DNA of 64,000 nt, taken from the sequence record NC_041911.1. One strand, given 5' to 3'. The notes under the pieces are model-generated. The model searched no databases. It was not told where the DNA came from and saw only the letters and a list, made by a program, of their open reading frames with translations. This document shows positions 5,750 to 6,420 of this stretch, piece after piece (positions within the stretch are counted from its first letter, which is position 1; every line of letters starts with the position of its first letter). The position numbers were made by a program, and so were the translations under genes.

Positions 5750-6420
5750 CAAGACGCTCCACCAAACGTCAAGAGAATTCAACCGCAAACCAAACATCAG
5801 CCGAACGAATACCACGCTTCTATAGTGAGTGTGGGGAGAGGATACGGGCCCATCTACCTATCTTACCTCTCCCCACTACCTCGCAGGCCACCATCAAGCC
5901 TTTTGAGTAAAGTGGTAACAACCCACTCACTACCGACACTGTTACCCGCCTCAGGACGTAACCTGTGCATTGGGTCAGCTCCCAACTCAATGTCGGAACT
6001 ACGCTCGTTCTAACGTAGCTTTGCTTTTTACCGCTTACCGAGATAGCGGTGTTTACCTCGCCTCATTTGCTCGGGTCTTTGAGGTTTCGCAATTCCATAT
6101 CCTTTTTTGATAGGCTGGAGGTCTGCAAGAGGTAGAGTTTCATGCCCCGGCTTCAGCTGATGCACTTTTCCCTACTCGCTCCGCACCCACAGGCTATCCC
6201 TCTAAACTAAACACCGACTGTCGCATGGCTGCTACAGCTCCGTATCGCTTGACTTTAATTGTCGACTCTAAACCACTACTACCTATCAGATCTTTGCGAG
6301 GTATGTCGGTCTTACATTCTTGCGATGGGCTTAAGCTACTCTGGTGGAGAAACCTAATCAGCAAGCTGCCGGTGTAGAAACGATCTAGAGCCGCCTGTCA
6401 CTCCGAGTGACGGACAGTGT
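5750..6420 (-). ncRNA. Candidate large structured non-coding RNA (~670 nt)
   Basis: No minus-strand ORF of 60 aa or more in 5.7-6.5 kb; perfect helices 5831-41/5866-76, 5823-31/5924-32, 5914-20/5940-46, 5933-38/5991-96, 6030-35/6045-50, 6397-6401/6407-11; bounded by terminators; strand inferred from context. Confidence 0.6.

Follow-up and report, generated by a model that had tools for sequence, protein, structure and literature searches.

The 64,000-nucleotide (nt) stretch of sequence record NC_041911.1 analysed here, hereafter the window, belongs to Ralstonia phage RP12, a phiKZ-related jumbo phage (PMC5468394), and a window coordinate equals the coordinate in the RP12 record AP017924.1 minus 124000. 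Between open reading frames ORF127 and ORF128 the RP12 annotation leaves a gap of 917 nt (5649-6565), which is the longest stretch of the window without any annotated feature; in that sense an initial annotation of this DNA, which had singled out the region as the longest gene-free stretch, is borne out. The only longer gap free of coding sequences (7556-8542, 987 nt) contains a transfer RNA (tRNA) gene, tRNA-Asn, and the remaining gaps do not exceed ~320 nt. Genes around the gap are essentially all on the minus strand in this part of the RP12 genome. The stretch 5650-6560 (911 nt) is 100% identical to RP12 (AP017924.1) and RP31 and ~73% identical to phages FLC4-3B and FLC1-1B, with nothing annotated under the matching stretch in any of the four records. 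Comparative evidence from structure, together with the G·U content of its pairs as a guide to strand, indicates that the gap very likely holds a structured, independently expressed non-coding RNA (ncRNA) gene on the minus strand, here called RNA-B, which runs from a promoter-like motif to a terminator over ~783 nt (5700-6482). The initial annotation had placed an RNA of ~670 nt at 5750-6420; an RNA does appear to lie there, on the minus strand, and it is larger, with both of its ends outside those limits.

The upstream limit of the RNA unit is the terminator of the ORF128-131 operon (6540-6567, minus strand), a 12-bp stem followed by a T-run that is kept in the FLC phages and in an uncultured jumbo-phage contig, L005. 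At the other end lies the intrinsic terminator of RNA-B itself (5707-5732, minus strand), an 11-bp stem with eight GC pairs and a T-run, which covaries among homologues (helix 27, six double changes); as it stands just upstream of the ORF127 start, it closes a unit running from high to low coordinates. The initial annotation had credited the RNA with its own terminators on both sides, and both hairpins exist on the minus strand, but the first ends the upstream operon and only the second ends RNA-B. The 5' end is marked by the promoter-like motif CCCTATGTTATG (6482-6500, minus strand), the final G of which (6482) would be the +1 position by analogy with phiKZ late promoters, where the G of a TATG consensus is the transcription start (PMC4666361). 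An upstream consensus, CC(C)TAT..TT[AG]TGTCCC, is recognisable in most of 11 homologues and is weaker in the most divergent ones; its RP12 version, TTATG|TCCC, places +1 at G6482. At the corresponding position T(T)ATG|T is found in RP12, L005, FLC1-1B, L012, L017, L021, L015 and L016, and TTGTG|T in its place in FLC4-3B, L010, L013 and L014. On this analogy RNA-B would have a TATG-type promoter starting at G6482. FLC4-3B and L013 also have, immediately upstream, a AAAATTACC-like box similar to the middle-promoter motif of phiKZ. No sigma-70-type promoter was found at the RNA-B region, as expected of a phage that uses its own polymerases. Outside RNA-B, a late-promoter-like TTTATGCCG containing TATG (5694-5702, minus strand) precedes the next gene, ORF127. 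The window holds 13 exact copies of TTTATGCCG and, when one mismatch is allowed, 33 matches where 11.8 would be expected; in all homologues it directly follows the terminators of both RNA-B and RNA-A, a second conserved non-coding unit upstream, and precedes the next gene. Exact sites such as 3199-3207, 5694-5702, 7579-7587, 9493-9501, 18081-18089 and 30361-30369 are all on the minus strand and usually fall right after an intrinsic terminator, ahead of the next gene, a pattern repeated in all related contigs and in a more distant contig, L006. TTTATGCCG is probably the late-promoter consensus of this phage group, combining the phiKZ-type TATG with a conserved downstream CCG.

Homologues of RNA-B were recovered from four isolates (RP12, RP31, FLC1-1B and FLC4-3B) and from 10 uncultured contigs representing nine distinct phages, ranging in length from 588 nt (L015 and L016) to 823 nt (L010). 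BLAST searches with the whole of RNA-B and with its core against 50,697 phage records matched only the four isolates. DNA pattern scans with invariant blocks added one more jumbo-phage contig in IMG/VR, the 283-kb L005. Exact and degenerate scans with three invariant blocks across IMG/VR, JGI metagenomes and GTDB returned only RP12, L005 and the L006/L007 pair, with zero matches in GTDB bacterial genomes and none in the JGI metagenomes besides L006/L007; one further match, L008, was discarded as a chance tandem repeat. A search for related loci in IMG/VR using ORF132 recovered RP12 alone. A protein search with this same conserved neighbour yielded 28 relatives, leading to eleven Logan/NCBI contigs of the same gene order, namely a dCTP deaminase gene, an ORF132 homologue and then non-coding DNA, and in the non-coding stretch of L010/L011, L012-L018 and L021 an RP12-type RNA profile found a homologue, that of L018 being cut by the contig end. 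The dCTP deaminase gene, examined for synteny with other phiKZ-like phages, gave only ~46% matches, in Pseudomonas phages. The G+C fraction of the core varies from 0.38 to 0.57 across homologues, and the hosts are therefore probably not all Ralstonia.

Over several kilobases downstream, RNA-B is the best-aligned DNA when RP12 is compared with FLC4-3B or L005, the protein genes there giving only short aligned patches; genome-wide, RP12 and the FLC phages share 77% identity over 35% coverage (PMC11530567). Conservation within the RNA is a mosaic in which invariant blocks of up to ~60 nt alternate with variable segments rich in paired changes. RNA-B keeps its place after the second conserved RNA locus, and the protein genes on either side change.

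These paired changes allowed a consensus structure to be evaluated at three depths of divergence. Among the four closest sequences, 207 pairs were proposed with 95.9% of cells paired, and double changes are seen in 32 pairs, shifted controls giving 2-5. In the eight full-length sequences (alignment A5) the corresponding figures are 157 pairs, 93.3% of cells and 65 double-change pairs against 18-27, with 117 cells carrying double changes and a covariation score of 0.389 against at most 0.137 for shifted controls. The core module alone, in 11 sequences (alignment A6), has 34 pairs with 97.6% of cells paired, 14 of them covarying against 1-5 in shifted controls. In each of the three sets none of 500 shuffles reached the observed value. 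A lack of covarying helices had been named in the initial annotation as one result that would refute its proposal, and with 65 of the 157 pairs doubly changed in eight sequences, and an excess over controls at every depth, such helices are clearly present. Among the cells of the proposed pairs, G·U occurs 190 times and A·C only 17 times, an asymmetry unlike that of a plus-strand RNA or a DNA structure, which makes minus the sense strand. Gene orientation, terminators and folding energies agree on this strand, the minimum free energy (MFE) being -285.2 kcal/mol (z = -5.06 against shuffles) for the minus strand and -232.8 kcal/mol (z = -3.10) for the plus strand.

From 5' to 3' the architecture comprises a 5' hairpin, domain 1, domain 2, a 3' hairpin and the terminator, all coordinates below referring to the minus strand. 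The 5' hairpin CUGAA/UUCAG (6449-6466, helix 2) has double changes in four of its five pairs. Domain 1 (6192-6439) is closed by an 18-bp long-range helix (arms 6439-6421 and 6209-6192; helix 3, seven double-change pairs) and contains three conserved elements: the nearly invariant UGACAGGCG (6392-6400), mostly unpaired in the consensus apart from two bases, within which GACAGGC is invariant in 11/11 sequences and the flanking U nearly so; UCCACC (6343-6348, helix 8), invariant, 100% paired and the 5' partner of a candidate long-range pseudoknot; and the hairpin GAC-AAUUAAA-GUC (6251-6263, helix 9), almost invariant in both stem and loop. Domain 2 includes the core (6054-5927) and a long hairpin (5880-5828). 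The core, with two hairpins and a three-way junction, is the most conserved module, and the core model R1 scores 141.9 bits in RP12; every homologue reaches 106-138 bits, even L018, a sequence outside the training set of the model. Within the core, the hairpin GUUGGG-AGCUGA-CCCAAU (5969-5986) has an invariant loop and a stem in which U-A is replaced by C-G in 8/11 sequences, and the junction-closing helix CCGACAUUG/CAGUGUCGG (5933-5996; arms 5996-5988 and 5941-5933) is 100% paired with double changes in seven of nine pairs. The long hairpin GGUAGUGGGGAGAGG...CCUCUCCCCACACU (5828-5880; helices 23-24, five double-change pairs) carries a conserved UAGAUGGG loop. A GGGCCC 'kissing palindrome' in this loop was considered and set aside, as inspection of the homologues (alignment A4) favours intramolecular (A)GG(A)/UCC pairing. 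The 3' hairpin (5747-5775; helix 26, seven double-change pairs) presents the invariant GGUGGA (5758-5763), the partner of UCCACC, in its loop. Among the segments that are invariant or nearly so in 11/11 sequences are UGACAGGC, UCCACC, GACAAU.AAAGU, GUAAAAAGC, UGGGAGCUGACCCA, GUAGU and GGUGGA.

Read base by base, all six helices listed in the initial annotation are present in the RP12 sequence, for example gtggggagagg (5831-5841) with cctctccccac (5866-5876), an 11-bp helix contained in the long hairpin, and tagtgagtg (5823-5831) with cactcacta (5924-5932). These two helices, together with 6030-35/6045-50 and 5933-38/5991-96, are conserved and mostly covarying, but 6397-6401/6407-11 and 5914-20/5940-46 are specific to RP12 and have no counterpart in the consensus. 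The pseudoknot that had been proposed from the crossing of 5914-20/5940-46 with 5933-38/5991-96 is consequently unsupported, the first of these helices being missing from the consensus. A better pseudoknot candidate emerges from RNAalifold, which on an 11-sequence alignment pairs UCCACC of the domain-1 loop (6348-6343) with GGUGGA of the 3' hairpin loop (5763-5758) in 11/11 sequences. An alternative local CUC/GAG hairpin around UCCACC is lost in L015, L016 and L021, which favours the long-range contact.

RNA-B does not correspond to a described RNA family. At gathering thresholds the only Rfam 15 matches in the window are tRNAs, and at E≤10 the interval 5600-6620 gives only noise and a match of BSR0709 to the terminator alone. 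The homologues likewise gave no match in L017 (E≤10), in FLC4-3B (L002), L005 or L006 (E≤1) or in nine further loci (gathering thresholds); matches to mir-1249 and cow-rumen-4 were rejected as noise across scans along with the terminator-only BSR0709. The GOLLD model finds nothing at its gathering threshold in the window nor at E≤10 in 5600-6620 or L017, and identical searches with ROOL were also negative. No match was obtained for RNase P RNA, transfer-messenger RNA (tmRNA), 6S, signal recognition particle RNA or other housekeeping RNAs with the Rfam models, supplemented by ARAGORN for tmRNA. The families suggested for comparison in the initial annotation (GOLLD, ROOL, OLE and introns) thus match neither RP12 nor its homologues, and its view of the RNA as one that resists assignment to GOLLD or ROOL and is possibly a new class gains support from this lack of Rfam matches, the non-coding character of the region, its conservation and its covariation.

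RNA-A lies between ORF132 and RNA-B (~7588-8540, minus strand) and is recognised by shared boxes and its own terminator, followed by TTTATGCCG. The first three boxes are AAA(C/G)(U)GUAGGG, CAAGUUAUGG and CUAUAGCC; the fourth takes the form CCUUGGGCU in L015-L021 and GGAGUGUAGU in RP12-type sequences, and the fifth is UGAGAGACU. In the uncultured relatives RNA-A measures 370-680 nt with no tRNAs at the locus, and homologues were located in L010 (9090-9840), L012 (8896-9565), L013 (8740-9360), L014 (8716-9320), L015 (9000-9365), L016 (8426-8795), L017 (7286-7965), L020 (1684-2325) and L021 (7272-7830). L020 appears to hold two tandem copies. In RP12, the FLC phages and L005, tRNA genes are inserted within RNA-A, between the CUAUAGCC and UGAGAGACU boxes. 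Rfam gave no RNA-A match, and a consensus fold on a MAFFT alignment produced 13 pairs only. Locally the G+C fraction rises to 0.65-0.70 at 7600-7900, against ~0.50 around it, a spike that coincides with the 3' part of RNA-A and its long GC-rich hairpins.

The initial annotation placed its RNA next to a phage tRNA cluster; tRNAs do occur nearby, but in RP12 the cluster amounts to one canonical tRNA-Asn and two tRNA-like elements at a distance of 1.5-2 kb. Four tRNAs lie upstream of RNA-B in the FLC phages. Both RP12 tRNA-like elements are situated inside RNA-A as well. One of them (8080-8187, minus strand) scores 35.8 bits with the Rfam tRNA model, was missed by both ARAGORN and the RP12 annotation, and resembles a class II tRNA gene with a long variable arm and 25 nt where a 7-nt anticodon loop is expected. 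The equivalent stretch of the FLC phages encodes a tRNA-Tyr, and the RP12 element could be an interrupted or non-decoding tRNA. The other is a third cloverleaf (~7868-7975, minus strand; ~7859-8024 in FLC4-3B, L002) with an acceptor stem, a D arm and a T arm bearing GGUUCGAAUCC, in which a hairpin insert of ~35 nt replaces the anticodon loop. RP12 and FLC4-3B have it in conserved form, and it could serve as a mimic or decoy of tRNA; its tandem tRNA arms account for a sub-threshold match to YrlA (Y RNA-like) at 7942-8023, which was rejected.

Part of the RNA-B core recurs outside this lineage. An exact 21-mer, GAGUUGGGAGCUGACCCAAUG/GAGTTGGGAGCTGACCCAATG, is also present in L006 (IMGVR_UViG_3300035034_002228, 81.8 kb; L007 has the same sequence), in an intergenic structured element of ~290 nt (1600-1890, minus strand; MFE z = -2.7) two genes downstream of the major capsid gene. 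The capsid protein is 62% identical to those of Psa21 and PA1C, identifying L006 as a different phiKZ-like phage, and no such element is present in phage Psa21. In L006 a 6-bp helix encloses the 21-mer, after which come a hairpin with a GNRA cap, a terminator and TTTATGCCG; the core model aligns positions 60-121 of its 128 to this element with 18.6 bits locally, or 20.1 bits (E ~0.007) in a 262-kb search. The two RNAs have in common the 21-mer in a closing helix with a second hairpin, that is a three-way-junction sub-module, as well as the terminator and TTTATGCCG; the remainder of the L006 element is unrelated, much shorter and in another genomic place. On this thin evidence the AGCUGA three-way junction may be a reusable module.

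The closest parallels to RNA-B are GOLLD and ROOL, ornate phage-encoded RNAs of 0.6-0.8 kb that lie in tRNA islands, were found to be expressed during lysis in a single case so far examined, and form RNA-only cages of still unknown function (PMC5737381; bioRxiv 10.1101/2024.12.08.627333). RNA-B shares with GOLLD (Weinberg et al., 2009) a size of ~800 nt, several domains, phage encoding, a location beside tRNA islands and a mixture of conserved and variable parts. In GOLLD, tRNAs can sit in a variable linker region (bioRxiv 10.1101/2024.12.08.627333), the counterpart of which lies here in the neighbouring RNA-A rather than in RNA-B. The tRNA context of GOLLD is seen in RP12 and the FLC phages and not in the uncultured relatives, and is a likeness of context, not of homology: no Rfam model match was obtained at E≤10, helices and motifs differ, and so does the host range, here Ralstonia jumbo phages related to phiKZ together with uncultured relatives, instead of Lactobacillales or lake metagenomes. 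ROOL (Weinberg et al., 2017) is similarly large (mean 581 nt), ornate, phage- or prophage-borne and near tRNAs, with multistem junctions, pseudoknots and few invariant nucleotides, but its architecture is unrelated, no Rfam match links the two, and RNA-B has a far narrower distribution (~13 genomes). In ROOL a long-range loop-loop contact predicted from sequence proved to be intermolecular (bioRxiv 10.1101/2024.12.08.627333), and the same could apply to the UCCACC/GGUGGA contact of RNA-B. The ncRNA candidates of phiKZ, 90-210 nt long and derived from 5' or 3' untranslated regions (UTRs) (Gerovac, 2021; Putzeys, 2024), resemble RNA-B as non-coding products of a phiKZ-type transcription apparatus, some of them near tRNAs, to the extent that RNA-B is transcribed as predicted; they are short, mostly UTR-derived and have no demonstrated conserved tertiary architecture, in contrast to a free-standing RNA of 0.6-0.8 kb with ~150 conserved pairs. 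RNA-B is not described in the RP12 paper, the FLC paper or the surveys that could be searched, and a large IMG/VR survey of viral structured RNAs, which reported motifs of 29-151 nt only and required at least three IMG/VR regions, could not have covered it. RNA-B thus appears to be a new class within a known kind, the giant ornate phage ncRNA near tRNAs, with a small and narrow family.

We consider that 5700-6482 is probably a free-standing gene on the minus strand for a large folded RNA, which may act in trans as an RNA particle linked to the tRNA/RNA-A island. Such an RNA would be transcribed from near G6482 by the phage's own RNA polymerase at a TATG-type promoter and released at the intrinsic terminator (5732-5707), and the 6-bp UCCACC (6348-6343)/GGUGGA (5763-5758) contact would link the 3' hairpin loop with domain 1, of the same molecule or of another. 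By analogy with GOLLD and ROOL, the folded particle may work in trans during lytic infection, as a scaffold or self-assembling RNA cooperating with the adjacent tRNA/RNA-A island. The parts of this reading are not equally secure. A trans-acting role tied to the island is plausible by the same analogy, although we hold it with something short of even confidence, and an RNA-only oligomeric assembly is unlikely; indirect hints of it are an invariant AGCU-containing loop and the invariant UCCACC/GGUGGA contact, the latter of which could form intra- or intermolecularly. Several observations weigh against the proposal as a whole. L020 carries the upstream RNA-A and lacks RNA-B, which is thus dispensable in at least one lineage, and the family is small and phylogenetically narrow, with ~13 distinct sequences. 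The shuffle-based controls are inflated by shared ancestry, although relatedness is preserved in those with shifted partners. As the UCCACC/GGUGGA contact is invariant, covariation neither supports nor contradicts it. The promoter assignment is weak, with TGTG rather than TATG in four homologues, and the transcript ends, abundance and timing are all predictions from sequence. Nor do the sequence data point to a specific molecular partner or activity.

Three groups of alternatives we regard as effectively excluded. Chance ORFs of 45-103 codons occur on both strands of the region, as a missed protein gene or set of small ORFs would require, but mismatches are spread evenly over the codon positions (85/79/68 against FLC4-3B and 75/82/71 against L005), indels are mostly of 1 nt and occur throughout, the longest stop-free frames differ among homologues and none of the chance ORFs matches a Pfam or PHROGs family; coding was accordingly rejected. 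A DNA signal such as an origin or pac site is as hard to sustain, since G·U outnumbers A·C 11:1 where bases pair, as would be predicted for an RNA and not for DNA cruciforms, and we regard this pair of explanations as exceedingly improbable. An unusual or degenerate self-splicing intron or mobile-element RNA (group I or II, ωRNA, bridge RNA or retron ncRNA) is just as improbable: the size would suit an ORF-less group II intron and introns are frequent in phages, yet no family, the group I and II intron models included, is matched at E≤10, RNA-B sits between a terminator and a promoter-like motif with no flanking exons, no reverse transcriptase, TnpB/IscB or recombinase gene adjoins it, and it occupies a fixed syntenic position with no other copies found by the pattern scans. 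Only marginally more credible, and still very improbable, is a leader acting in cis, in which a giant riboswitch or attenuator would use the terminator at 5732-5707 to control the gene downstream. That terminator is indeed strong and immediately precedes ORF127, which has the same orientation, but the gene after RNA-B comes from at least five unrelated families (one in RP12 and L014, others in FLC4-3B and L010, L012 and L013, L017, and L015 and L016), indicating an independent gene and not the leader of a particular mRNA; in every homologue TTTATGCCG separates the terminator from the next gene, and no conserved alternative antiterminator pairing is seen. The DNA before RNA-B is just as changeable, consisting of small ORFs (RP12 and the FLC phages), one inserted gene (L015) or directly the RNA-A terminator (L012, L013, L014, L016, L017 and L021).

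Two functional alternatives remain live and rank behind the trans-acting RNA particle. RNA-B may serve as a decoy in anti-defence or host takeover, titrating a host protein, whether an RNA-binding defence effector, a nuclease, the ribosome or a tRNA-modifying factor; this we judge rather unlikely. Its phage origin, autonomous promoter and terminator, variable periphery around an invariant core and patchy occurrence among relatives (L020 being without it) would all suit a decoy, as would the neighbouring tRNA-like elements with replaced anticodon loops, possibly decoys themselves. Against this, RNA-B has no repeats like those of known RNA antitoxin or anti-CRISPR mimics, no defence gene is adjacent, and a conserved architecture of ~600-800 nt far exceeds the need of known decoys. 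A little less likely again is a new ribozyme in which invariant junction nucleotides (GUAAAAAGCA, the AGCUGA loop, GUAGU and UGACAGGC) form an active site, its substrate being for example the tRNA-bearing RNA-A or some other RNA of phage or host. Catalytic RNAs typically have such a size, a multi-junction architecture and unpaired nucleotides that never vary, a tRNA or tRNA-like locus adjoins the gene, and large complex bacterial RNAs have been considered especially likely to be catalytic (Weinberg, 2017; PMC5737381), but no known ribozyme family is matched and neither a conserved candidate cleavage site nor flanking exons can be discerned. Returning to the RNA particle, a broader and doubtful proposal, offered tentatively, is that RNA-B and RNA-A together constitute an unrecognised giant RNA class of phiKZ-related nucleus-forming jumbo phages, a self-assembling particle or ribozyme acting on phage tRNAs or on factors of host translation or defence, with the AGCUGA junction as a reusable functional module found also in the chimallivirus lineage of L006.

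Few bacterial or phage ncRNAs above 500 nt have conserved complex folds, the list comprising rRNA, group II introns, GOLLD, ROOL, OLE and a few others. Each such large RNA has opened unexpected biochemistry, most recently RNA-only nanocages, and RNA-B would add an unrelated class that is so far known only from jumbo phages related to phiKZ. As phages of this group construct a compartment resembling a nucleus and transcribe with RNA polymerases of their own, a large RNA retained by them is probably tied to that unusual lifestyle. As RP12 and the FLC phages can be cultured on Ralstonia, RNA-B is directly open to tests of its expression, knock-down, structure and partners. Its tandem arrangement with RNA-A, in which tRNAs occupy a variable linker, may provide a new angle on why giant phage RNAs occupy tRNA islands.

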